DNA of 64,000 bases, taken from Trichoplax adhaerens (lineage: Eukaryota; Animalia; Placozoa). The DNA lies in the NCBI RefSeq assembly GCF_000150275.1, contig NW_002060948.1, positions 4,572,336-4,636,335 on the forward strand, given 5' to 3'. This document shows positions 3,633 to 27,400 of this stretch, piece by piece; position 1 is the stretch's first letter; each line of letters starts with the position of its first letter. The notes under the pieces were generated by a model. The model did no database searches. It saw nothing but the letters and a program-made list of their open reading frames with translations, and was not told where the DNA came from. The position numbers and the translations under genes are program-made.

Positions 3633-6600
3633 TCATCGTTTGCCAATGTTGACGCCATAAATTGCATCTACTGGCGTAAAGATGATTCCTTGTAGCTGGA
3701 TATTTCTTATCTGACCAGAAAATCCTGATGAAAGTCTATTTTCTGTTTTTGCTGAAATATCTGGTGCACCACCTTAGTATCAAATTTCAAGTAGAATATC
3801 ACTCTTACATTACGCGAACTTTGTAATAGTAGTATTTATCGAGTCGTATCCAAAGCTTTATTCATTGTAAAATTATGTAGCTAATTTATTTTCATGTATT
3901 ATTTTACGTTTGCTTTAAATCGTGCAGGGTTATAACCGATATTTTGATCATGATTGCATTTCGATTCCATTTAAAACAAAGATTTTATGGCAAGATATAT
4001 ATACATTATCCTTACTGGGAAAACTCCAGTCTTAATCATTGTGACACTGCAGTTTAATTAACTCCTGCTAATGTTACCATTTGAAATGTAATCATGAAAT
4101 TACCAGATATTAGTACGAAAAGATGTTAGTACCTTGAAGTGAAAGATTAGTTAGTAACTATCACGAACTAGAAAAACAAGTACATGCTAGATGCTAGACA
4201 AATTATTCATCTCTGATAAAAATTTAATTAAATTTTTGTAGTGCTTTTTACTTAATTTTCAGTCGTGGTTTGAATTAAATAACATTATTTTGTGATTATC
4301 GCTGAAATTTTGCTTTACATGTGTAGTGTATTTAGAATATACTGTAACTATATTCTACTCTTAAATATATACATGTTGTATTGCTCTTATATTTAGACAG
4401 ATCTACAGTCCGCTTACTCTACATTCATATATAGACTACTGTATTTAGTTATTACGGTACTCGCTGTTTTCTACAATCATCTGCTATTTTGTAACCTGTT
4501 ATGGTATATGTTGTATCTAATTCCACAATCCTATTCTCTGCATGTTCTCTATCTTTAAAATTATAAATACCGGCTATTTCTACCTCAGAGTTCGTTAGCT
4601 TCTCAGTTAGTCTTCTAGTTAGTCTCTGTTACATTTTCTAGTTTATCGTAACAATAATTTAATAGTCCAGTAGGGCTTGAGTAATGAACAATCACGAGTC
4701 CAATAGAGCTTAAGTACCGAACTAACTTTATTATGCGTTAGGAGCCGTTATATATAAGGGACAATTACCAGTAATGTGCAATAACGGACATACCATGAAT
4801 GTTAACGACAATTTTATCTTATTCATAATAAGATAACAACTTATTTTCTTAGATATGCTATCTAGGACTTAATCGTCATCATTACAGAACAACTGCAGAA
4901 ATATACTGAATAAACAGGCTTATTCAATATGATAAATCTTATCGATACTATGTCTACAACAACTGTATTATTTCGTAACAGCCTCTCGCAGTTTAATACT
5001 TCTACTCGTTACTCACGACAGCTTGCACGCTGATCTACCGTAACTACCTCACTGTACTTCACTTTACTAACCTACAATAAAGCGTAACTTTTATAAACCC
5101 TTTGGTGCAATAATTGTAAATGGCGACTAAATCTCAATCCTCTGAGATATTGAACCCTCCATCACAACATGTTATTGGCAATTACTGGTTTCAATCAGAA
5201 TATTATGACTGTTAAACATGTAGACTACGAATGCTAACATGTAAGTTTTGTGCATTTCCCGCGATTTTATAGGTACATTTAACTAAATGTAGCAACTGAT
5301 CTACTCCACTATTGTTATCAATATTACTATAAAGCTGCCAGGATATTTATTGTAGGATTATAGCCAACCGTCTGACAAATATTTCTGCATTTAAATTCTA
5401 TTTAGGCTTAATAGTATCAGCATTTGTCGAGTTACATACCTATGTAAGCATAATTGGAATTTACTACCAGTCTTGATGGGCCAAGATTGGATGATTTGGA
5501 TAACTGAGCTTCGAAGTTATCGACAAACATTTTAATGCTAGAGTAACTCCTGTAAGATAAGAGATATACATCAAAATTGCTTAGATTCGATTTTTAACCA
5601 AGTTTACTCTTCCGAAAAATTCTATAGATATTATAGATAGTATATTATGATATTGTAATTTTTAAAGATCTTAAGATCTTATACCTAGTCACATTGACTT
5701 GATAGTACTTCCCAGTAACGATATTTTGAGATGAAATTAAGTAATTTTCGCGTCCATTAACATGCAATCTATTGATGTTATAGAATATAGTACTTTTAGA
5801 TGAAATCCGAATGCATATGAATAATAAGTAATTAAAAATTTATTAGTATAATTAATGAGGTTGAAATAGACATTGTTCTGTTCTGTATTAACCTAAGCTC
5901 GAGCCTACTTTTTATCAAGGCTATATAGAGATATTTTCCCTCTGATTTCTGGATTGATTAAAAGACAAATTTTTAGATATTAAATTGAGGATATGTGAAA
6001 AAAGTGTCTCAGAATCAGAAATGATCAAAATTAGATAACTGACATTGCTCATTTTACTACACAAACTACTTCTTTATAGTGTCGAAATATCTCAATGGGA
6101 TATTCCTAACCAAAAGCTAAAATATTTACTGTATTAACTATTTAGCGTAGATGTGCGCTCAGTACAATCTTAAGATTCCACTTAATCTATAATCACGTAT
6201 ATCCAGTGTCAATCTTTTAATTTTATATATCTCTTAACGATTTCTTTCGACCTTTTAATTTATTTGAGAGTAGCACCTCAATAGGATATCAATAATTGGC
6301 TACATAATCTACCGTCGGACGAACAGTGATTACTGTAGTCTCTTTATAAGCCCAAGCATTTACAATAGTGAATTTAGAATTAAATATATTTACAGTGATA
6401 AGTAATAGAATATTAAATGATTATACCCCTCAATCTTACCTGACCAATCCAATATAGGGCACCTTCTAAGTTTAAGGCATTAAATTCGAACTGAATTTGC
6501 TGATATCTGCACAAAAAACAATAATTAATTCTTATGGTGACATGTATTTTCGCCTGAAATTCTTAGACTAACAAAAGTTAAATTGTAATAAGATGTCGAT

Positions 6601-9600
6601 TAAATCGTTGATATGCTTTTATTATTAGTTGCAATGCTAAATAATACAGCGCAAGAATATGAAACTTACTCATTAATAATATTTACTGAATAGAGCAGGT
6701 AACTATACTTTTGGAAATATGGAATATCGTTGGCATTTAGTTGTTTCACTGTCGAGATAAACGTAAAGCGATAGTGATAAATTTCATCATATTCTTAAAT
6801 ATTTCTTGCATATTCTTTATTTATCGGATAACTTTTTACTATTCTTACATCGCTAACTTCATGAGGAATTTAAAAGTTAGTCAAGTTAACCTTAAAGCTA
6901 TCTTTAAGTAAAAATGCAAGAATGATGCCTTAACCCTACAGTTAAATTGTATTTACAGTACTATTTATTACCTTCCCCACAGTCCGATAATCCATAGTAT
7001 GGCATAGGACATAAGCAATAATGTTGTTTACCGTTTGCTATACATCGTCCATTATTCAGACAAGGTGATCGGCTACATGGGTTTGTTGTCGCAGAATACA
7101 TTTTCTCGCAGTAATTTCCATAATATTTATCTCTACAGCGACATGTGAAATAACTTTCGTCTTGTGCAAATTTTTGACATGTACCTCCATTTCTACACAC
7201 CTGGTCTCCTTCACAGGCAGCGCCGCATTTGTCCATTTGACGACTTTCGACTGGCTTACTTAAGTCTATCTGTTTGTTATTAAATGATAATTGAGAGATA
7301 CAACCGGAAAATCCATATGGAACTTCAAATAGTGGATTCAGGCTTAAATCGGATAATCCTGCTAAGAATATCCAGCTAGATAGATCTATTGTTGTACTTT
7401 TACCCAAAAAACTACCAAAAGTAAATGCCGGTGTTCCACCGTTAACTACTACCGAACTCCATCCCCGTTCATACTTTGCTACTATGTGGTACCACTTGCC
7501 TTCTTGAATAATGAGTGGATAAACAACCTTACCGGATATTCCAGCAGGGCTACTTTGTGGTCCACTTGAATAGTAAAATGTAATGTGCCGATCTTTAACA
7601 CCTAGTGAAATATAATGCATTGTCGAGGGTGTATTTTCTGCAAATCCGTTACTTTGAAATATAATCAGACCATCATGAACTTTAGTAGGCTTAATTTTGA
7701 TGTTGATTTCATGATAGTCAGATGGCCTTAATGCTGAACCAATAAATGCTCCATAGGCTGCATTATTAGGATTGCTATTATCAAATCCTGGGAGTATCGA
7801 TGTTACTGCAATTTATATATAAGACACATATCACATATAGTTTTAGTAACGATCTGAAATATCGAAAGTAATATCTGCCTGATTATCTCTTAAGAACATA
7901 AAATCTTCTCTCGTATTTTCCAAAGTAACAATTACTGTAAAAAAAATGTTTAATTTAACCTGCTATATCTACTTGCAGCCGTGCCGATACATTCCCATAT
8001 GCATTCGAAACATGACATTCATAAATTCCAGCCATTTCTTGTTTAGGATTTCTAAATTTTAATGAAACACCTGACACCAATGATTGATCAATACTACCTC
8101 CAACTTTAATCCAGGTCACCGATGGAGCTGGTTTCCCGGCACCATTACAGGATACATCTTTTGTTTCACTTTTTAAAAGCCTTAATGCAATTCTGTTTGA
8201 TGGTGATATTTTAGCCGAAGGATAATCTGAAAATTATGGATTTTGCGTTAGAAAAATATTTTACACGTATGTGTGTAACATTTATATTATTTGATAATAG
8301 TGGATTTATAGAGAGAATAAGCTAATTTCACCACATTCTACTAATAGCAGTCAATATTATATTAACATTGAATGACTACTGACGTTAGCGTTAATTCAAT
8401 TTTCTCACCATCAACATGGAGCTGAACAGAATCTTGGCCAATCCCATCATTATTAGAAACAGTGCTAGTATAATATTCGCCTGATTTTTGAACATTTCGT
8501 AAAATTAAGAATGGACCGTATGTCTGGTGATGATAAGGTAAACCGGCTCCCATTCTAGTCCATTCACATTCTTTACTCTGTGTGCCATTAATGTTACTAA
8601 ATAAAATAGCTGTACCCCCTCGTAAAACCTTAGCTGACTTTGGCTGAACATCAACATCAACATCTGTTAATAATTATAAATCAAGCTTGTAAATAGAAAA
8701 TTTAAAAATTCTAATGTCTTTAAAACTCACCGGTAATACGGTATGATGTATTTTTTAGCAGAGATTATGCTTATGTATTGATTAGAATTAAAAATAGATA
8801 AAGCTATATTATATTGTATTAATGCGATATAGTCTACTACTTACGCTTCGATAGATCAACAACCAAAATTACATTTTTAGAAACACTCCCATCTTGATTT
8901 GAAAGTTGGCAAGTATAAATACCGGAATGGCACTCAGTATTAGCTGGAAATATGAGTCTACCCTGTTGATCTTGGAAAACACCTGATGGGAATTTAGTGT
9001 CGCTTTTAGTAGCCCATTTTGGGATATTTTGGGAAGATTCGGAGAAGCATGCAAATTCTAATCTTTGACCTTTCCTAGCATAAACAATCCCTGATGGCAC
9101 CAGTTTTAATGATGGTACTGCTGCTTAACGAAATTAAAATTTAGAAGTCGAGTTGGGAAATAAATTCTAGAATATTACATGCTATCATCTGCAGTACTAG
9201 GATATTAAGTATTATCATCTATGAATGAATTTATAATACATCTAACCTGAATTTGCTTGATAGAAAGACATCTAGATATAATCAGAATAAATACATTAGC
9301 AGCTAAAGCATCAGTTTTTACTATACATGTAATGGCTTATATCACTAACGTTTCGGATGAGATCATTTATCGTGCAACTATAGTTGTGAATTAACTCGTA
9401 ATACCAAGAATAGAACTAATGCATTAAATCCATTATTTCTCCTATAAATTAATTTGCTATTCTACCGCGTTAACATTAATGGTAACTAACGAACTATGTT
9501 ATTTAATTTATAAAATAAATGAATCTATATCGCATATAAAATAGACACCAAAAAATGTTTTATCATAATGAATCTGATCAATGTTACTAGTAACTCATTC

Positions 9601-11769
9601 AAAATACTTCCAAGTACAATTGGATAAATTCTCAACATTCATGAAGCCAAAATTGTCGCTCAAATTATACCCCTATTAAGTAATATAATCAGCATTATAG
9701 TATTTACATCTAAATTAAAGTAAAAATCCATAGCGTACCTTTATCATCGAGCAAAGGTAAATTTAAATCGTTAGAAAATAAAGTGTTGAGAAAACATAAT
9801 AAAAAATCAAACATCAGTTAGAAATCATGCTTAAACACAGCACCTTACAGTGTTTAGACAAGTCTATTCCAATTATGTGTGATATATTGTTTTATATTAT
9901 ACTATCCCGAAATCTCGCAAAACCTCGTTCGTGATAATGTTTTGTTGTAGTTTAAATTGAGTTTTCACTACAATAATCTCTTTTCAACTTGCTTCTGAAT
10001 TGATTTCTATAAAGATGCATTGAAGCAATTATTATGAAGGAGTTGAGCATAGAATTTCTCTTATAAATGTTCTAGTGTCGGCTACTTGCGGTAGTTGCGG
10101 TAGTAACGGACTCATAGTAGCTGAAAAGAAGATATTTACGATTGTTCTAGGAAAATAGTTATCTTGCCTGTACTTTCAGCCTTTCTCTATGTGTTTAGGT
10201 CTCGACTTTGGGCCATACATTAACGAGAACAAGGGTAATAAATATTTTAAATTTTAAATGTATAAACGATCAGAAAGTAGAATTTCACCTTGCTTTAATT
10301 TTCGAGTACCTCAAGTGTATCATTACACTCACTGTATAGTATATAATCTTGGTTAAGTTAAGCTGACAGCTAAAAAATAATTGTATCTTCGTTTTGCTCT
10401 AAGACGCTGCAGGGAACAGGTTCTTAAGTAACTTAATAGCAAGATCCCGATAATAAATAGTAAAATGGTGGCACCAGTTTGTAGGATACTAATGGTGTTA
10501 AAGATACTACATTTGGGTATTAGGATAGTTCAATACTATTAGTGGATAATTTAGAGGCGATAGCAACGGACTTAAGTGAGAATAGAATATGTTATAAGAA
10601 AGATTATAAAAGGCTGGCTTCATGTGAAGGAAGTTTAGTTTGAGCTCTAGCTGTGCATGGATTACGTTGTCTAACTTTGCTACTGTTATTCCATATTATA
10701 ATAAACGTATTATTTAACAATAAAATTAAGAAATAAACTATTTTCATCTACTAACTTTGGGAAACAATTTATTAAGTTATCATGCCATAGTAAATCGCAT
10801 TGTGGTAGATGACTGTAATATACTTATGCATAGTAAGTATAAATCTTATAATATGAAAATTAAAATGTAATTAAGTAGGAGTACGCCCTAACACATAATA
10901 TGTATACACTTCCAAAAATCCAGATGCCGGCCTTTGATGCCAAACTTAGTAGAAATCATAATTATTTAATATTAATATTATTAATGGGATTACATGAAAC
11001 TTATAACCAGGTACATTATTTTACAAAAGAGACATTAATAAAGTAAAATAATGTCAGAAAAATTTGTTTAAAAACTTGTTACTTTTGCGAAACCTAAATT
11101 AAGATTATCGGTAACGACAATAAACTTATTTGTGTGCCAGTATTTCTTTATAAAACTGAGGGCTCTCATAAAGTTGATTCTAGGCTTAATTTACGACTGT
11201 CCGCCTGAGTTTATATTATCAGAGAAATTATTTTATAACTATGAATCTAGTTGTAGCACTGATTTGTGACAATCAAGAAAATTATTGTATAAGAAAGTCA
11301 TAACAGGTAAGCTTATTTCCAGAAATAACGATAAAAAATATTCATTCTGAGAGTTTTTTATTATTTTATAACGAGGTGTTCTGCTAGAGTAATGTATATC
11401 GTGGAAAAATGCTAAGATTCTACGAGCTTATATTAAAATAATTAGCAAAAACTTGCCTGTTATTAATCTAATATACTATAGATAGCAAGTGGATAATTCA
11501 ATAGATTTAATGGGAAGATACCGAATTATTATAGCCGTTGATTTATGAACGTGTTAAGGTGAAAGCAAACTTTGCCACTTAATACTGAAAGCGTTTGCTT
11601 GTACCTTAAAGCCTAATAAGTGCAAGGTGCTTCTGAAAATTCCTTAATAATTGCAATGGACGCAATTAAATATTCTTAAGCAAACAAATGACATTGTTTA
11701 ATAATTGCTACTTACCGCAAGTATGGCAAGATAGGCTACCAATAGGAGAATGCTGAAGGGTTTTCTCAT
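3633..11769 (-). CDS. Secreted perlecan C-terminus paralogue (signal peptide-Ig-Ig-Ig-LG-EGF-EGF-LG), 12 exons, 748 aa
   Basis: Exons 11716-11769 (MRKPFSILLLVAYLAILA), 9247-9271, 8845-9120, 8409-8663, 7960-8226, 6972-7805, 6670-6748, 6440-6506, 5893-5948, 5685-5768, 5440-5549 and 3633-3772 (TGA). All are GT-AG and phase-compatible, total 2247 nt, with no internal stop seen. Exon boundaries match the perlecan 3' end. The first two exons are the least certain. Confidence 0.82.
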
Positions 11770-12083
11770 CTTGGATGATCTGAGAAAGCGTAAAGCAACG
11801 TATACAGTAGGCTAAAAATTACGAGTTATGGGAATTTATCTCCTCTGACGTTCGATTTAAATTGCCGAACACTATCAAGTGTATTATTAAGGGGATAACT
11901 TATACTATGCTAGTAGTGATCCAGCCAGGATACAGAAGATCGAAAGAACTATATTACTTCTTCGCTATGAATTAAACTACTAATCCTTTTTAGTAGTAAA
12001 CTTTTAAATGAAGTCTAGACTTTAGTCTGACTGCAGCTTATTTAATTCAATTTTTTGCTAATGATTGGTTCATTTCCAATTGA

Positions 12084-12133
12084 NNNNNNNNNNNNNNNNN
12101 NNNNNNNNNNNNNNNNNNNNNNNNNNNNNNNNN
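12084..12133. other. Assembly gap (50 N)
   Basis: Run of n characters. Confidence 0.99.
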
Positions 12134-13529: not shown

Positions 13530-16420
13530 GGGCTGTATCATTCGACAGACTTACAAGCAAATTTCAGAATTGAATTAGTATAATACTTATACGTCATAAA
13601 TGCGATTTAATAATGAGCTGGTAAGATTTCGATCATTTTCTCCATTATTTAATTACTTTCTAGCAAAAAATTTAATTTCCGTAAACAATAAATCGAATGC
13701 ATAGCTATAGTCAGTCACTTCACGTATTCTACATACGAATTCTAGCCAATATATTAAGGTTTCTAAGCAGAGCTAAGAATTCTAAGTGCTATCGATTAAT
13801 TTTAGGAGACAAATTTTCATATCTGATTTGAACTGTATTTTACATAAGGCAGTCTGTAATATGTATAGAGATCTAAATAATACTATCTATTTAAAATCAG
13901 AAAATTTCAACATTTGGCGAAAAGATTCTATCTGATACTCAGAATAAAGGTAAATGGTAAATTTTATTAAGAAAATATTGTCAATATCATAATAACATTA
14001 ATTGCATAGCACTTAATAACAACTAATAGATTTAAAATTACAAGCGTATTTGATTAGAAATGTTCTCATACAAGCTTAAATTGAAGTTATAGATTAGTAC
14101 AATATATTATAATGTAGAGAATCAGGTACTAAATGTTATAAAAGTTTAATTGTTTTTAATTTGTAGCCATCATTACAAGCTATAGTTACCAATAACTATG
14201 CCACAAAGAGTATCTTGAACTGCCATCCAGACCCACGCGGGCCCTTAGTATATCCTTGGAAATCTGTAGTAAATCTATCGCCTGTTTTGGAAGCGATATT
14301 ATCTGTTCCTCCTTACTGAACTTTCACAATTATCTTATGCTAACCTATTTTCGCTTTATACTTTGAAGTCTGCGAGTATTGAGGTAGATGATTCTAACTC
14401 ATAGAAATATCATTCGATACTTGTAGAGAATTGTCACTCTAGGAGATTGATTAGTACCAGTAGCTTGGTGTTACGAAACTGCTTTCTTGATCTGACCTAA
14501 ATTAGTCTATCTAATCTATTTAACCTCTATTAACTTCGGGATTTTCTCAATTAGAAAATTTTCTTATTGCAACACCTGAGAATAGAGTTCAACAATAAGG
14601 ATTAAAGTTAGTTGAATTTTATTTAGTACTAGTTATAATGTGCATTAATACCAGTGTACTCGATGTTAGCATCAGTGGAATTGAAATTAAAAAATTAATA
14701 ATTAAGCTTATATATAGTTTAATCCTAAGTCACATAAACGCTCCGGTACTAGTCTCTCATATTAAATTAAGTAATATTCTATAACGAAGCTCTGTTTTCA
14801 TTTTTGAAAATTTAGGCAAAATAAAATGTCTATATTGAATAATTTAAAAACAGGACTGTAAAAATTTTAGATAGAAGAAATACCCCTAGATTATTGATTT
14901 CGTAGATATAAATAGAATTTTATGTAGATACATTGTAACTTTAACAGTATGAGCCCTGCCATCACTAACAGATTGTGGTGCTGTCAACAACGCCTCCCCG
15001 TATCTAAATTAAACCTATTGATTATTTGTTAGAATTAATATATATAGTATTTTATATTGATTAGCGTCTTAAGTAGAAATCTGACCAATAAGTACAAGTA
15101 CAGTATTTATAATTTTGGTATTTAATATCATTGGATTGAATAATATGTCCTACCATAGCTCGACTCGGCCAGAATTGACAGTAACATAAATGTAATGGGT
15201 CGTAGAAGTTACTATCTTAAACACAGAAAACACAAATTAAACTTCGTTTCTATATTATTTTATGATATACAATTAATAGTATAACTATAATTACGCATAC
15301 ATTGCCTTGCCAATAAAGTAGTCCGCTAGACTGATTGGTTGCAAATGTAAACTGTATATCTTGCTGCCTGTATATTATAGTCACAGTAATCAACGTAGCG
15401 CAATTAAATTTGTACAAAAGTTCTTAATTATTAAGTAGTAATAACGCAATAAAATCTAGTACTATCACTTACTCTTTTAATGCATTGATATAATAACGTA
15501 AGTAACTATTTCCATTGAAAGATGCTCCATCAGACGAACTAAACGATAAGGCTAATAAAGTAGAGGGTTAGTCAATAAGATTATAAACACACTGATCGTG
15601 CAATAAATAAAATAAAGTAGATGTACTAATATCTATAATAGGCTAGTTAATTACTATACCTGTATCATAAGTAACTATTTTCATTAAAAGATGCTCCATC
15701 AGGCAAACTAAACGATAGCACTAGCAAAGTAGAGGGTTATTTAATGGAATTATAAACATACGAAGCAAAAATTGTATCATTTCTGCACGGTGCACTGTGA
15801 TATGGATCTGATGGTGATGTATAATTTCTTTCGCAAAGCATTCCAAAATTACTAGATTGGCAGTTACAAATACAATAGTTTCTATCAGCTACCATAAGCA
15901 AGCATCGGTATTTTGGAAACTATTCTGATCATAAGAATTATCGTAGGCTAATTATTCGCGGTTTCTAAGACGCCACTTACCAAATTATGGGTGGAATTGT
16001 CTAATTCACTGTCAAATCTAGAGATACATCCTAAAAACGGAATTGAACCTCGAAGATTGAATTTTGATCAAATTGATTGATGATTCCTAGAAACTTCCAA
16101 TGTGGCAAATCAGTAATTATTCTGCTTTCTGATTGTCTAGTATGCTTTTGCACAAAATTACGTTAGAGTACTTAGCTTCCTTACTTTCTATGGTAAAACA
16201 TATGAACATTCCAAAGGAGAGTATAAAAGCGAACTAAAATTACGGTGTGGGAGAGAGGGAATAAATGATACTATGCAAACCTTGACTACCTAAACGGATC
16301 TTACACTAACGAGTGACCAAAGTGCTCAATGGAAACTGTCTGTTTTTCATATCAGTAGCTATGCTACGGTCAATCCCGGGAATGACCGGCAATTAGCTAC
16401 TAAGCTAATACTACCACAGT
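13530..16420 (-). pseudogene. Pseudogenised duplicate of perlecan domain V and its 3' flank
   Basis: Aligns by eye to ~21720-24470. The LG-EGF exon copy (15780-16420) has indels. There is a 1-nt deletion at ~14996 (tccccg versus tcccccg at 22961). The penultimate exon is truncated by foreign sequence at ~14469-14810, and the last exon copy (~14170-14312) is degraded. Confidence 0.85.
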
Positions 16421-16499: not shown

Positions 16500-18470
16500 T
16501 CACTTAAACAAAGATGACTATCCTCGATAATTACATAACAGGGAGGAGCATTGACGGCGAAAACTGCCAAGTAAATTAGTACATTGTTCTTGACAATCCC
16601 CATTCGAAATAATAAATCTAGTTAATAACAGATATTTTTCGCTAATGGTTGATTACCTTGTACGTAATTAATTCCAGCGAACTCATTTCTCACTATGCAC
16701 TTGTAACTACCTAGGGTATTTACTTTTTTACCATACTGATAGGGATTCTAGGGGTATTCGTTAATTTCTAATGAATGGAAATTATAACGTACAGCAGCAT
16801 TAAGGTCATTGCGGTAGTAAATATTGATCCAATGTAATGCCACTTGTTAGAAAATTGATGACCGTGGTCACAGTAAACGCCCGTATATCAAGTTCTGCAT
16901 CAATATTTAGAATCATTATGAGATTGAGTGCATGTCCTTTTTACGTAAGGATTGGAATGACAGTTATCTGATTTAATATTGAATTGTTGTAAAAATAGAT
17001 TAATGGTTACTTTCCCATTTTGAGATTATAAAGCTTTGTTGATTTGAACAATTTATAAGCCAAAGTAATCACAAGTAAAACTTAGCTCTTAAAAAAAAAG
17101 TTTGTTTGATCTACGAGATCTTTCTGAGCAAAGTTTATCTGTGATTGAAATTACGATAAAATAAATTGAAAAATAACTGTATCTTGTCGAATAATGACGC
17201 TGATTGCAAACTGGTAGTGGATGAAGTAGATAGATGAGATAACAGTCATAATTTTTGACAGTGGTGGTTTGATTTCAATGAAAAGGATTGCGGCCCCATG
17301 AAAAGCATACTTTGCCGACGACAATATTTTCTTAAACTGATAGCAAGGTAAAGACATCGACGATTTTGAAGTATCTAAAAAGGGTAACAAAAGGAGGAAG
17401 CTTCTTCAAACAACAATATTGATAGGCCGATGCCTAATAATATTGTATTTAGGCTCTTGTATTGCATAATGCAGAGAAATCTTTCTAAATAACTTGACGC
17501 CATTGCTCGTCATTAATTCACAATTTTAACTTACAGGATTGCAGTCTTCAAATTAATAAAATATTCGAAGAATATAGTAATAAATTACGACAGTATAAAT
17601 AAAAGTATTTATAGTACTTGTTGGATAATTTTCCGTCAGTTATTCTGGTGAGACTGTAACGCATCTAATCATGCTTAACCTTCCTCCGAATATCATCTGG
17701 CTATTGTAGCTACCATCTAAACGATACCAAGAATTATTTAAATATAATCGATCACGAGTAATATCTAAAAATTACTCAACTCAATATATTGATCTTATAG
17801 TATCAGTTAGCAAGATACGATTATGACATGGATCAGTTCATATTAACTAAGCAATCCGATAATGATGTTAAAGTGAAGACGTATTACTAGCCTAAGAAAT
17901 TTATTTTTCAAACTGCAAATTTTGCATGTTTTTTAAACTTAAACAGGAAGTATTGTCTGCTTTTAAAATTTTACCAGCTGGACACCGGCAGTAGTAACTA
18001 CCAATTGTGCTGGTACAATTTCCTTGACACAGCTGATTCTGGCATTCATCAATATCTATCATTAACGACGCAAATCGATACATAAAGAAGGATGAAAATG
18101 GTCGAATTCGATCTATTTCTAAATATCAAAAGTTTAATTATAATAGTAAATAAAGCAACCGACTATTTTGGTATTGCTTTCCATTAAAACTGAGATCGCA
18201 TTGGCATTGGTATTGAAGTCTAATAATAATACATTTTCCATGATTGCAAGGGCCAGGTTCGCATGGATGAAAAGCTAGTATGTAAAGTGAAAAAGTTGTA
18301 GACGGCTATACGCTGGATAGTGATTAGTATCGAGCTGACCACTGTTGAAAGAACACTGTACCTTTTTCTCAGTGTTCTTCGATGTCACCTACAGGATATA
18401 AACATGTATAGCCTGATTTTTCTGAAGTACAATTACCGTAATTAAGGCAAGGATTTAGATTACAACAATC
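16500..18470 (-). pseudogene. Decayed EGF / calcium-binding EGF exon array
   Basis: Exon remnants: ~18362-18470 (CNLNPCLNYGNCTSEKSGYTCLYP...EH*), ~18160-18274 (HPCEPGPCNHGKC...CQCD, last Cys to Tyr), ~17938-18054 (DIDECQNQLCQGNCTSTIGSYYCRCPAG, open), ~16658-16767 (EINEYP*...NTLGSYKC) and ~16505-16617 (frameshifted NGDCQEQCTNLLGSF). Confidence 0.75.
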
Positions 18471-21400: not shown

Positions 21401-22430
21401 TTAGCAAAGACTTTTAGTGTTCCTTAATTTATCAAGGTCTGTCACAACCGAGATTGTAACACAAGAATTAAACGGGATTCTTTCCTCTAAAGTAGACTTA
21501 ACTATCTAAGCAACTAACTCTAAGCACTCTTTAATCAACCAAACTTAGATTCGAGTCTTAGACGATAGATTACTCACGTTTCTATGACATTTAATATTAG
21601 TTAATTAGTAGCTAGGTGTCAACATATGATTCATCACACAACAAAATTATAATATTGATGATGCATTAATTAATGAATGTCACAAGGTCACAATACTTTA
21701 CTCTGAAATTTGTGTTCTGTATCGTTGGGTAACCTTCCATACAAATTGCAGAACTAAATTAGTATAATGCTGATGCATCATTGATACGATTCAATAATGA
21801 GCTTGAGAAATATTTGTAAATTTCAGCTATCGTGATAGCTCCTTTCCCGTAAAAATTAAAATTAAGAGTTTCATAAACAATAAATAGTTTACATAGCTAT
21901 AGCTAGCTATTTCACCTATTTTAATACGGAAGCTAGCTATTATATTAAGGCTTCTAGCAGAACTAAAAGTCTTAAGTGCTATCAATTAATTTTAGGTGAC
22001 AAGTTTTATATCTGCTATGAACTGTGTCTTGCATAATGCGGTCGGCAATTAGTAATAAATGAACGGTAGCTAAAGTGCTATATTAATATAGGGTCTTTGT
22101 AGAAATTGCGACAGCAGATATCCATATAATTCTAAATAATATTGCCTATTTTACCTTATAAAATTGTAATATTTTGTGAAAGGCACTCTATCTGATATTA
22201 AAAATAAAGTAAATAGTAAATTTTATTTCTGAAATATCGTTGGAGATTATATCATTGATTGTATAACAATTTACTAACAATTAATAGATTTAAAATTACT
22301 AGCTTATTTTATTAAAAATGTTTCCATGCAGACTTAAATTAAAGTTTTAGATTAGTAAAACAAAATGTAACGTAGAAAATCAATTACTTAATGTCATAAA
22401 TTTTTAACTGTTATTGATTTATAGAGATCA

Positions 22431-24470
22431 CTACAAGCTACATTTTCCTACAGAAACGCCACGAACGGCATCATCAACTGTAAATTGCAATCCAGACATA
22501 CGCAAGTTTGTAATACATCCTTGGAAACCTGTCGTAAATCTGTTTCCTGTTTTGGTAGCGATATTATCTGCTCCTCCTAAATAGAAGTTTGCAATTAGCT
22601 CATGTTAAGCTCTCATCACTTTAAACATTCAAGCCTGTCACGGTAGATGATACTAACCCATAAAAATATCGTTCGATACTTGTAGAGTTCTGCCACTTCC
22701 AGGAGATTGATTAGTACCAGTAGCTTGGCTACCATCAACCCATAAGGAACCATTGTTGGCATTTCTGAAACATGGATAAAAAATAAATGTCTATACTAAA
22801 TAGTTATAATTTAAATACAGGATTGTAAAATTTTAGATAGGAGAAATACCCCTAGGTTATTGATTTCGTAGATATAAATAGAATTTTATGTAGATACCTT
22901 GTAACTTTAACAGTATGAGCCCTGCCATCACTAACAGCTTGTGACGCTGTCAACAACGCCTCCCCCGTACCTAAATTAAACCTATTGATTGTTTGTCAGA
23001 ATTAATATATATATAATATTTTATATTGATTAGAGTCTTAAGTAGAAATCTGACCAATAAGTACAAGTACAGTATTTATAATTTTGGCATTTAAAATCAT
23101 TGGATTGAATAATATGTCCTACCATAGCTCGACTCGGCCAGAATTGACAGTAACATAAATGTAATGGGTCGTAGAAGTTACCATCTTAAACACAGAAAAC
23201 ACAAATTAAACTTCGTTTCTATATTATTTTATGATATACAATTAATAGTATAACTATAATTACGCATACATTGCCTTGCCAATAAAGTAGTCCGCTAGAC
23301 TGATTGGTTGCAAATGTAAACTGTATATCTTGCTGCCTGTATATTATGATCAAGTAATCAACGTAACGCAATTAAATTTGTACAAAAGTTCTTAATTATT
23401 AAGTAGTAATAACGCAATAAAATCTAGTACTATCACTTACTCTTTTAATGCATTGATATAATAACGTAAGTAACTATTTCCATTGAAAGATGCTCCATCA
23501 GACGAACTAAACGATAAGGCTAATAAAGTAGAGGGTTAGTCAATAAGATTATAAACACACTGATCGCGCAATAAATAAAATAAAGTACATGCACTAATAT
23601 CTTTATTAGGCTTGCTAGTTACTATACCTGAGTTGCAATCAAGTAATCCATAGTATGGGAACAAGCATTGACATGTATAACTAGATCCAGCCGAAACACA
23701 AGTACCATCGTTTCTGCATGGTGCACTGTGACATGGATCTGACAGTGATGTATAATTTCTTTCGCAAAGCATTCCAAAATTACTAGATTGACAGTTGCAA
23801 ACATAATAGTTTCTATCAGCTACCATAGGCGAGCAGCGAGCATTATTTTCGCATGTACTCTGATCACAAGGATTGTCGCAGGCAAACGTATTCGCGGTTT
23901 CTAAAGCATCAGTAACCAAATTATAGGTGGAATTGTCTAATTCGAATCTAGAGATACATCCATGAAAACCGAATAGAACATCAAAGATTGGATTTTGATC
24001 AAATTGATTGATGATTCCTAGAAATGTCCAATGTGACAAATCAATAATATTGCTCCTTCCCGATTGTCTGCTATCCTTTTGCACAACAGGACCATTATCT
24101 ATTTGCAAGGTTGCAATCCCATCTCGGAAGACTGCTGAAATATTATACCAAGTATTGCTGACGATATCAGACGAATATGCTAAGCTATCTTGAATGCCAG
24201 CAGGACTATCATCTGGTCCGCTAGAGTAGTAGAATGTGATTCGACGATTTACTATGCAAATTGACATATAGTGAATAGTAGTAGGTGTTTTTTCATCAAA
24301 ACCATTACTGGCGAATATGACCATTTCATTTTGATTGCTAAGAGGTTTAATCCTTGCAGTTATAAAATGATATGCTGAGCTAGTTAGAGCCGTCGGTGTC
24401 TTGCTAGCGTATGCATTGTATGAGTTGCTTTGAGTGGCGTTGTTGACATATCTCCGGATATTTGCCGCAA
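22431..24470 (-). CDS. HSPG2: Perlecan domain V: LG-EGF-EGF (one exon, 23628-24470) plus terminal LG (exons 23441-23519, 23270-23336, 23123-23184, 22898-22981, 22658-22764, 22431-22576)
   Basis: LG1 has [10 protein letters not shown] and is followed by two 6-Cys EGFs. LG2 splices to ...[12 protein letters not shown] / [18 protein letters not shown] / [14 protein letters not shown] / [28 protein letters not shown] / GSLWVDG...IFM / [25 protein letters not shown]...VGKCSL*. Confidence 0.92.
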
Positions 24471-27400
24471 CTATTAGTTTATTTTAGATATAGAAATGGC
24501 ATATTAAGTACATAATTATAGATATAGTGATGAACTCTATATTTAATTTTATTAATAGCTACATTTGAACAGTTAGATTTCTAAGAATAGATATTGTCGT
24601 GATACTAATTTAGGCGACTGATAATTACTATATTAGACATTGTTGATTAGTAATGTTAGCCAGTAGCCAAGTATAGTAAATAAATTTACGTGACTTGATG
24701 ATACTGTGATTGAGAAGTTGCTCAGCACCTTATAGCGTTGAACATTAACAGAAAATCAATGATACTTTCTTCAGATTGATTCGAATAGTAAAATATATTA
24801 ATGATCTATTTGAGGAAAATCATTTGCTTGATGACTTAAATCTGATTTTAGTTTAACTTTTTGACATCAATACATTTAACGAAATGTATTTAAGAACTAC
24901 AGAGATAAATTTAGACTAGACTTCACTTCTTTTGAGGCTAGAATACTTTAAATTAGGTTCTTGTTCAATTATTGCTCTACTATTCTTAAACTTTACGGTA
25001 AACTCTTTTGCTAATTTTTTTTGGACGAAGACAGCTGCTATTTCATGGAATACTTTTATTGAAGTAGCATGCAATAATTTCAGATTATTATAATCGTAAA
25101 TTAGTATACAGTATTAGAGGATATTAATTTGGATATTGTACTATATATTCGGTATTATCAGTGCTCATCATATGTAGGGCAATAGTTAGCTTAGGTGTAA
25201 ATAGTAGTTTATAATTATTTTACCTACAGTAAATGAAATTTAATTAGCTGAACGCTCTCCTATAGTAAGATTTAGAGATAAGCATGGTACATGACTAATT
25301 TTATGCATGTCGTAAGACAGTACTGGAAGTAATAACTCAAATTCCCATTCATTTTGTAATAGTCTAACTTAATCACAGATGATAATAATGGCATATGGAT
25401 TAGTTCTCTTTTCGATATGCTACGACTAACCTGCTATTTTAACATCTAGGATGGTTGTTGATGAACCAATAGTCGATGTTACAGTGCAAACATAAGGCTT
25501 AGCTTTTGCTGCATTAACGTTCCTCAGAGTCAATCGATTTCCAAATGCTTCAAAGAAGGAAATTGTTACACCATCGGCTGCTGTCCATCTCCTACCAGTC
25601 ACTGAAGGTATCCCTGCCCCATTACAAGTGTGCGTTGGAGCAGTATCGCCAGCTTTCAGCACCAATGGATTTACTGAAGGTGATATGCTAGCTCTTGGAA
25701 ATTCTGAATTTTTCAATAATAATCTAATTAGCTACTGACTTAAATAATCTTCTCCAGTTATGGCTAAAAATGAAGATTTCGATCAATAATGATGTAAATG
25801 CATCCATTTTAAAATTGATTACAAACTTCTCCGATTCCTACCGTTTATAGTAATAGATGTACTTGCTGAAGCTAGGCCAGCAATATTAGTTACATTACAC
25901 ATGTAATTTGAGTTACCATCAGGTAGCCTTCGTAAAGCTAAGTGTGTATCGTTAAAAGAATAGCCAGATGGTAATGAACCTCCGCTTTTAGTCCAATTGC
26001 TTGTAGTTTGCAACGAATTTTGTGGGTCACATAGTAACATCACTGATCCACCTCGTAAAACTGTCAGGCTTGATGGTGAAACAGAAACAGTAGGTGATGC
26101 TGAAAGATATACAGAAAATTCGTTTATTAAAATTAGAACGTTAATTTATTCTGTAGACAGTCATTATAATTATATGCGTAATAGAATTATCAATAATCCG
26201 CTAGTCTTTAATGTTTAAATAAATTGTTAGGTCAATTTTTATTTAAATTTCTAGCTTGAAACAACTGTGATAAGATGTACTTACGAATAACGGTTAACAC
26301 AGCGACACTCGTAGCAGATATTTGCCCTTTACTAGTTGTGCAGTTATATGAGCCACTGTCATTAACAACGGCTGAAGAAATTGTTAATACTGTTCCTGAC
26401 TGGACGATATTAGAAGGAAAAGATCCTCCGCTGCCTTTCGACCACGTAACTGTTTCCCCTTCCGTCGAATCTGAGCTGCAGTTGTATACTGCACTCCCTC
26501 CAACAGCAATGAACTGTTGTGGTTTATCAATGATGGCGTTAATAAGAGCTAAGAGAAATAATTAGTTTATCATTATTGTAAAATCCTTTATTAAAGCAAC
26601 CCTTAGGAAACGTTAGCTTAAGATCGTATATATAACCGATTGCAAGAAATTACATTGATAGTATTGAGATTTATGATTAAACCATACGTTTATGAAACTT
26701 ACGATTAACTGTCAACGTAACACTTGAATTGATCGTTCCAGCTGCATTTGTAATAGAACAAGTATACGAACCGCTATTTCTTTCTTGAGTATTGTTAAAT
26801 AGTAATCGATTTCCAATCTGCGTTGCATGAAGTTGTAAAGATTGCCCGTCTGTTCTTGACCAAGTAATTTGACCAGCACTGGAATTTGATTGACATGTAA
26901 ATTGCAAAGAAGTTTCTACTATCACCCTTTGGGAGTCAGGAGTTATCCATACGACAGGATACACTAAATTTGAAAATAATGGGTATGATTGAATAGAGCA
27001 ATAAGTCTATAACATATAGCCTGGAGGTTCTTTCTTTTTCTTTAATAAGATATATTCAATCCGAGAATATTGCATTAGATTCTATATGAACTTACGGATC
27101 ATTTGTATAGTTGTAAAGGCGGTATCATTTCCAGCAGCATTAGCTAAATAGCAGCGATATGTACCTATGTTATCTGCAGTGGCTGAGTTTATTATTAACG
27201 TTCCATTGCTAAAACTACGGACATTATTAGGCAATGTTGCAACACCAAGTTGGCTCCAGATGGCACTTGCTGGGCTAGTCGATGAGTTACAAGTAAATGA
27301 ATATTGTCTTCCTTCGAGAATCGTAGTATTTACTGGCGTTATAGCAGCGCTTGGAATAACTACAGTGCATAGATAGTAAATATTATAAAATTTTTTCTTA

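Follow-up and report, generated by a model that had tools for sequence, protein, structure and literature searches.

A separately transcribed gene for a perlecan-tail protein next to the giant perlecan gene of Trichoplax adhaerens

Layout of the locus and exon structure of gene C

The window analyzed in this work is a stretch of 64,000 nucleotides (nt) of Trichoplax adhaerens (NCBI RefSeq assembly GCF_000150275.1, contig NW_002060948.1, positions 4,572,336 to 4,636,335 of the forward strand), which is AT-rich with approximately 31% GC. Its minus strand holds a giant perlecan-like gene, running from approximately 57.9 kb down to 22.4 kb, and a 12-exon gene for a perlecan-tail protein. In the following, the 12-exon gene is called C, the tail of the upstream giant perlecan A, and two further copies of this tail B and D. 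C is a real protein-coding gene that is transcribed separately and lies just downstream of the giant perlecan. Its exons are listed below with the domain that each encodes and the evidence on which it is based.

11716..11993, minus strand: exon 1; start codon at 11769, 54 coding nt (11769-11716) read as MRKPFSILLLVAYLAILA; 5′ untranslated region (UTR) of at least 11993..11770
9247..9271, minus strand: exon 2, a 25-nt micro-exon; end of the predicted signal peptide (MSFYQANS, then a split codon); spliced contigs
8845..9120, minus strand: exon 3, Ig1; Pfam Ig_2 28.7 bits (cut-off 27) and ig 24.0 bits (cut-off 21.8); spliced contigs
8409..8663, minus strand: exon 4, Ig2; Pfam I-set 21.6 bits, under the cut-off of 23.7; spliced contigs
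7960..8226, minus strand: exon 5, Ig3; Pfam Ig_3 40.6 bits and I-set 35.8 bits; spliced contigs
6972..7805, minus strand: exon 6, first LG and two EGF; Pfam Laminin_G_1 1e-11, Laminin_G_2 2.3e-11, EGF 3e-7
6670..6748, minus strand: exon 7, 79 nt, start of the terminal LG; spliced contigs; 79-nt exons of the same phase in A and D
6440..6506, minus strand: exon 8, 67 nt, terminal LG; spliced contigs; 67-nt exons in A and D
5893..5948, minus strand: exon 9, 56 nt (62 nt in A and D), terminal LG; contig end at 6440 continuing to 5948; homology with A and D
5685..5768, minus strand: exon 10, 84 nt, terminal LG; open frame, AG/GT sites and 84-nt counterparts in A and D
5440..5549, minus strand: exon 11, 110 nt (107 nt in A and D), terminal LG; frame and homology
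3633..3772, minus strand: exon 12, 140 nt, end of the terminal LG; stop codon TGA at 3635-3633; 48.9% tblastx identity to the last exon of A

The coding model occupies 11769..3633 of the minus strand with 12 exons and a total of 2247 nt, i.e., 748 codons and a single terminal stop. All borders carry AG acceptors and GT donors, the frame is intact, and the micro-exon is required to keep it. In the alignment, the stop codon of C falls within 3 codons of those of A and D. The complete frame of 2247 nt and 748 amino acids that a first-pass annotation, made from the sequence, had proposed was thereby recovered exon by exon, including its reading of the N-terminus as MRKPFSILLLVAYLAILA-MSFYQANS|AVP. 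The last intron (3773-5439) measures 1.67 kb, compared to 150-250 nt between the Ig exons.

Transcription from a separate 5′ end

The RNA evidence consists of assembled contigs from four runs of three studies (X5, X6, X9 and X10, with X9 and X10 recorded as RNA-Seq) over positions 6084-12083. Eight of the 11 predicted junctions of C were confirmed by spliced contigs from three studies. The joints 11716/9271 and 9247/9120, i.e., the path 11716->9271->9120 by which the first-pass annotation had proposed to recognize the gene in RNA data, were both found in contigs of X9, X5 and X6 and hence in three studies. Since these contigs run without introns across 11716/9271/9247/9120, the 54-nt exon is real, and so is the 25-nt micro-exon. 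The joints 8845/8663, 8409/8226 and 7960/7805 were present in all four runs; further downstream, 6972/6748 and 6670/6506 were found as well (the latter in four runs), and a loose contig end at 6440 corresponds to the first bases of exon 9, read as the reverse complement from 5948.

The 5′ end was reached by a contig of X5, which spans 11716-11993 and then passes into Illumina adapter, so that the 5′ UTR measures at least 224 nt. Within this observed UTR, the start codon at 11769 is the first ATG, none being present between 11993 and 11770, and it carries an A at position -3. An in-frame stop lies at 11814, 45 nt upstream of the start codon. C is therefore a spliced and expressed gene with its own first exon and its own first AUG, which bears out the earlier proposal of a stand-alone gene. 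The 384 nt around the 5′ exon are unique in the genome, and a genome search with them found no donor of the new 5′ exon.

It could be argued that exons 3-12 also, or even mainly, serve as an alternative perlecan tail that is reached by read-through splicing, as the two genes are adjacent on the same strand with phase-1 compatible exons and the decaying copy B between them. However, the acceptors 9120 and 6748 were joined to C's own exons only in all four runs, and the contigs of these runs over 6084-12083, which drop rare variants, contain no joint or loose end from exons 1, 3 or 7 to upstream sequence. Polymerase chain reaction (PCR) also failed to connect both genes in earlier work (PMC4398486). 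Far from being joined solely to upstream perlecan exons, the cassette is linked through its 9120 acceptor to exons of C, and the use of these exons as a perlecan tail is quite improbable.

Three minor observations concern the same region. An AT-rich TTTAAAAG motif is located at 12008-12001, just upstream of the observed 5′ end of C. One contig of X10 joins 9099 to 11980 on opposite strands and was treated as a probable assembly chimera. The same contig carries 11373-11980 in plus orientation, and intron 1 sequence near exon 1 is hence present in this library.

The predicted protein

The protein encoded by C consists of a signal peptide-like N-terminus, three Ig domains, one LG, two EGF and a terminal LG. 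In Pfam scans run exon by exon, Ig1 and Ig3 scored above the cut-offs, and both retain their two cysteines. Ig2 remained under the cut-off (21.6 vs 23.7 bits) and both cysteines of its canonical disulfide are replaced, while they are kept in the penultimate Ig of A and D, to which the Ig2 exon aligns. Likewise, the terminal LG of C has lost both C-terminal cysteines (GQIRNI...IGKR), while A and D keep theirs. The exons hold Ig, Laminin_G and EGF only. Without SEA, LDLa and laminin-type exons, C does not have the five-domain order of perlecan, and no FN3 match was found in its exons with Pfam.

The N-terminus combines a basic n-region (MRK), a hydrophobic core of 15 residues with a Kyte-Doolittle maximum of 3.1, and A-N-S before the predicted cut. 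The 54-nt exon and the 25-nt micro-exon, to which the predicted signal peptide is assigned, are those confirmed by contigs. A hydropathy reading of the model revealed neither a second hydrophobic segment nor a hydrophobic tail, and the protein contains no acidic-SGxG glycosaminoglycan motif. By this rule-based reading, we infer that the product is soluble and secreted.

Correspondence with the tail of the giant perlecan

The giant perlecan carries SEA-, LDLa- and laminin-type exons at 57.9-43 kb, then about 37 tandem Ig exons and the following tail:

22431..26548, minus strand: parent cassette A, the last ten exons of the giant perlecan (three Ig, LG-EGF-EGF and a six-exon LG); exon model

Within A, the LG-EGF-EGF exon lies at 24470-23628, and the gene ends with its own stop codon at 22431-22433. 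The last ten exons follow a common layout with common phases in A, C and D. The 79-, 67- and 84-nt exons of A (23519-23441, 23336-23270 and 22981-22898) are equal in length to those of C, and length differences of 3-6 nt separate the remaining three LG exons. The mirroring of the perlecan exons by C, as described in the first-pass annotation, thus holds for layout, phases and the three exon lengths. At the sequence level, a positional Ig partner in A was found for the second Ig exon only; Ig1 and Ig3 of C have no demonstrable positional partner in A, and Ig exons from the middle of the array match them equally weakly.

Over 711 aligned residues, C and A share 32.9% protein identity, and the C cassette overall reaches 29-33%. 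Exon 6 has 38% identity to the A exon at 24470-23628. No nucleotide similarity of C to the rest of the window was found, and C is therefore neither a recent copy nor an assembly duplicate. With its low protein identity and its open frame, C is, as had been suggested, highly diverged yet intact.

Further copies of the cassette

A six-frame search with exon 6 covered the whole assembly (105,631,681 bases in 1414 contigs) and returned three intact copies, namely C, A (38%) and D (36%, contig C1412), as well as the broken copy B in the window.

13859-16155, minus strand: copy B, a partial younger copy of A 22118-24086 with 75-87% nucleotide identity
G000:C1412:2645600-2650800 (cassette from L011 8630 to L012 ~4727): copy D, a ten-exon cassette of three Ig and LG-EGF-EGF-LG

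B is a younger copy and is decaying. It shows 1-nt insertions or deletions in its exons 6, 10 and 11 and a 7-nt deletion in exon 12, and stop codons were found in the genome search. One tract of 97% identity extends over exons 7 to 10 including the introns, so that gene conversion seems to have taken place. Two open frames on the minus strand at 17904-18305, located between the stop codon of perlecan and B, match EGF and calcium-binding EGF.

In D, the LG exons measure 79, 67, 62, 84, 107 and 149 nt with the same phases, and the cassette is 41% identical to that of perlecan. Upstream of it, on the same strand, are several EGF exons and a uromodulin-type D8C exon, which would form a joint transcript with the cassette only putatively. 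The proposal of a stand-alone module therefore needs to be divided: C does have its own gene, but the cassette is not unique to it, as D carries the same one behind EGF/D8C exons. The perlecan 3′ cassette was duplicated at least three times with three fates (C stand-alone, D apparently joined to other modules, B decaying), and the locus illustrates clearly how exon cassettes of matrix proteins are shuffled in nature.

Orthologues, phylogeny and constraint

Among 1.84 billion representative proteins, a search identified three short open frames that stem from assemblies of another organism, one for each Trichoplax paralogue. P0001 matched C best (59-61% identity), P0004 matched A (62% identity) and P0002 matched D (66% identity); their source is taken to be a second, deeply diverged placozoan. 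In a protein search with exon 6 that was limited to lengths of 152-485 amino acids, P0001 was the sole match, the 748-residue model of C itself being beyond that range.

A maximum-likelihood tree was calculated for 44 LG-EGF-EGF units. Named perlecans were among them, as were eyes shut, pikachurin and sponge proteins, but no identified cnidarian perlecan. The six placozoan units formed a single clade with a support of 100/100, in which the C pair (99/95) branched as the sister group of A and D, whose two pairs were united at 100/97. Deeper nodes of the tree were not resolved. It follows from this topology that A, C and D are older than the split of the two placozoans and younger than their separation from the sampled bilaterian perlecans. 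The earlier suggestion of a partial tandem duplication is in line with these data, given that C and A are adjacent on the same strand with identical phases and that all placozoan copies belong to one clade.

The RNA contigs stem from a slightly different strain than the assembly, and the two differ by approximately 0.9% in exons and approximately 2% in introns. Of the exonic differences listed, 6 of 10 are synonymous and 4 of 10 are not, on 359 synonymous and 1273 non-synonymous sites, which is equivalent to a pN/pS of approximately 0.19 (Fisher p = 0.01). This points to purifying selection on C. Such selection would be similar in strength to that acting on the tail of perlecan itself. With regards to the longer timescale, the amount of change in C since the placozoan split is about that of the perlecan tail, although its branch sum is approximately 1.4 times larger.

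These data also bear on whether C is a transcribed relic, i.e., an expressed duplicate without function that is heading for decay like B. Such a fate would be in keeping with the loss of four cysteines, which form two canonical disulfides, and with the position of C as the most diverged of the three cassettes (29-33% identity). On the other hand, there is neither a stop nor a frameshift in 2247 nt and 12 exons despite the old origin of C, while the younger B is already frameshifted. The orthologous exon in the second placozoan is open and 59% identical, i.e., conserved like perlecan's own, synonymous differences are in excess, and the cysteines were lost in pairs. A functionless C is thus very improbable.

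LG domains of the placozoan tail

In local comparisons, the placozoan LG domains were set against LG1, LG2 and LG3 of seven perlecan-type proteins from bilaterians, of which three carry the name perlecan in their source. In all seven, the highest score of the terminal LG was with LG3, both for A and for D. For the terminal LG of C, LG3 was best in four of the seven, LG1 or LG2 scored slightly higher in two, and the last protein gave weak matches; the terminal LG matched perlecan LG3 at an E-value of approximately 1e-10. The first placozoan LG scored best against LG2 in most cases, and named perlecans were among the best full-unit matches to exon 6. From these scores, it can be concluded that the placozoan tail corresponds to LG2-EGF-EGF-LG3 of bilaterian perlecan, and that the Trichoplax perlecan has two LG modules.

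The published gene pair and the origin of perlecan

Two perlecan genes of Trichoplax, perl 1 and perl 2, which are located 13 kb apart on the same chromosome, were described by Warren et al. in 2015 (PLoS One 10:e0124578, PMC4398486; GenBank KP995435). Separate promoters were found by rapid amplification of 5′ cDNA ends (5′ RACE), and PCR never linked both transcripts (PMC4398486). Perl 2 was reported to contain Ig and laminin-G modules, and the total number of Ig was given as "about 40" (PMC4398486). In our model, the distance from the stop of A (22431) to the first Ig exon of C (9120) is 13.3 kb, and 38 Ig in A plus 2-3 in C compare with the published "about 40". Judging from this spacing and the Ig counts, C is likely to be the published perl 2, and its stand-alone transcript was hence probably already known.

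Warren et al. interpreted the two genes as halves that jointly hold the five domains of HSPG2, with an ancestral fusion leading to HSPG2 (PMC4398486), and this proposal was repeated in a 2018 review (PMC6266596). Accordingly, C or perl 2 would be the C-terminal half and the orthologue of domains IV and V, which elsewhere was fused with perl 1 into HSPG2. The tandem arrangement and the separate 5′ RACE products are compatible with such a split, and Ig-LG transcripts from two sponges were termed perl II-like (PMC4398486). However, the upstream gene already possesses a complete cassette of three Ig and LG-EGF-EGF-LG together with a stop. A, C and D form one placozoan clade (100/100) with C as sister to A and D, and the split between C and A thus occurred after the placozoan line had left the sampled bilaterian perlecans. 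In addition, A and D are closer to bilaterian LG3 than C is. The parts of the text of Warren et al. available to us make no mention of a complete tail and stop of perl 1 itself, of perl 2 as a diverged copy of this tail, of a third paralogue, or of a decaying fourth copy. The complete tail of perl 1, C as its diverged copy, and the existence of D and B argue against the split-gene scenario, which we regard as improbable. If C is a placozoan-specific duplicate of a retained tail, the split-in-two argument for the origin of perlecan loses its basis, and the perlecan of Trichoplax would be encoded completely by one gene, the tail of which has two LG. The main value of the locus lies in this correction to the perlecan-origin story and in a clear cassette duplication with three fates.

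Proposed origin and role of gene C

Taken as a whole, C is likely a real gene for a secreted protein that originated from a placozoan partial tandem duplication of the perlecan tail and was kept by selection; it is most probably perl 2, and we regard it as a paralogue instead of a split half. Exon structure, splicing, the separate 5′ end, paralogy, conservation and constraint were observed here. The following course of events may be envisaged. The 3′ cassette of an ancestral placozoan perlecan (three Ig and LG-EGF-EGF-LG in ten exons) would have been partially duplicated in tandem, and the duplicated cassette would have acquired a new two-exon 5′ end. This would have taken place in the placozoan lineage, before its two deeply diverged lineages split, and the C copy would then have been retained under purifying selection. 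By analogy with perlecan, we infer a role in the extracellular matrix, where the Ig/LG/EGF surface of C might bind partners related to those of the perlecan C-terminus without the long core, so that C could either be a short bridging element or compete for the partners of the tail.

Several points weigh against this explanation or narrow it. The borders between exons 9 and 10, 10 and 11, and 11 and 12 lie outside the read-covered stretch and are based on homology with A and D. Assembled contigs cannot judge rare read-through isoforms, the true start of transcription or the level of expression, and an upstream assembly gap of 50 N (12084-12133) comes within approximately 90 nt of the 5′ end observed for C, so that the promoter is incomplete in the assembly. 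C is short of two disulfides (in Ig2 and in the terminal LG), and its branch since the species split is approximately 1.4 times those of A and D. The pN/pS uses 10 of approximately 14 exonic differences and is thereby drawn from a small sample. Secretion and the binding role are read from the sequence, and the identity of C with perl 2 was derived from spacing and Ig counts and not from the GenBank record KP995435.

A more specific, though unlikely, function would be that of a soluble competitor or modulator at the C-terminal partners of perlecan, which would make C a gene-encoded analogue of endorepellin that is independent of proteolysis, with the cassette shuffled onto the EGF/D8C protein D as well. 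To our knowledge, Trichoplax has no visible basal lamina, and, if C did act in this way, the perlecan tail would represent a mobile matrix-binding unit in an animal lacking such a structure. The notion that a perlecan tail encoded by its own gene functions in free form is drawn by analogy, and none of the present results lends support to it.

Comparison with known systems

Vertebrate endorepellin and LG3 resemble C in that the C-terminal LG/EGF region of perlecan is free of the core protein. C is homologous to endorepellin in its LG/EGF units, which fall into one placozoan clade with the perlecan cassette (100/100), and its LG-EGF-EGF unit lies, with weak resolution, in the same half of the tree as the second units of bilaterian perlecans. 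The two differ in origin and composition, as endorepellin is released by proteolysis and comprises three LG and four EGF, whereas C has its own gene and encodes two LG, two EGF and three Ig. In its composition, C departs from the endorepellin-type module with which the first-pass annotation had compared it, as LG-EGF2-LG-EGF2-LG is absent from it. The makeup of two LG and two EGF is shared by the Trichoplax perlecan A and by D, unlike the LG1-EGF2-LG2-EGF2-LG3 arrangement. An endorepellin or matricryptin function of C would be an analogy only, and we know of no evident placozoan counterpart to the known receptors and the anti-angiogenic activity of endorepellin.

Reportedly, short endorepellin-containing HSPG2 transcripts were described in human mast cells by Jung et al. 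in 2013, a study cited as ref. 58 in PMC6266596. Like C, these forms are a genetically encoded perlecan C-terminus and not products of proteolysis. They are, however, alternative transcripts of the single HSPG2 gene, whereas C is a separate and diverged paralogous gene.

Pikachurin/EGFLAM, the agrin C-terminus and eyes shut are secreted matrix proteins of alternating LG and EGF domains and appeared among the homologues of exon 6. Their units are located outside the placozoan clade in the tree. Vertebrate pikachurin possesses FN3 domains. The Nematostella "pikachurin" (P0025) showed three LG, one EGF and no Ig in our scan, in contrast to the three Ig of C.

A missing aspartate in the placozoan LG domains

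The aspartate of the D-F/Y strand motif is a Ca2+ ligand in LG structures. In an alignment of 27 LG domains (18 from bilaterian perlecans and 9 placozoan ones from perlecan, C, D and the orthologues), it was present in 17 of the 18 bilaterian domains and in none of the nine placozoan domains, which carry H, K, Q or N instead. At this column, the first LG of C has H and its terminal LG has K. Judging from the alignment, the loss of this aspartate is a lineage-wide placozoan change and not particular to C. If the residue does act as the Ca2+ ligand, classical Ca2+-dependent binding of the dystroglycan type appears doubtful for the whole placozoan family. Trichoplax has a dystroglycan (PMC4582122).

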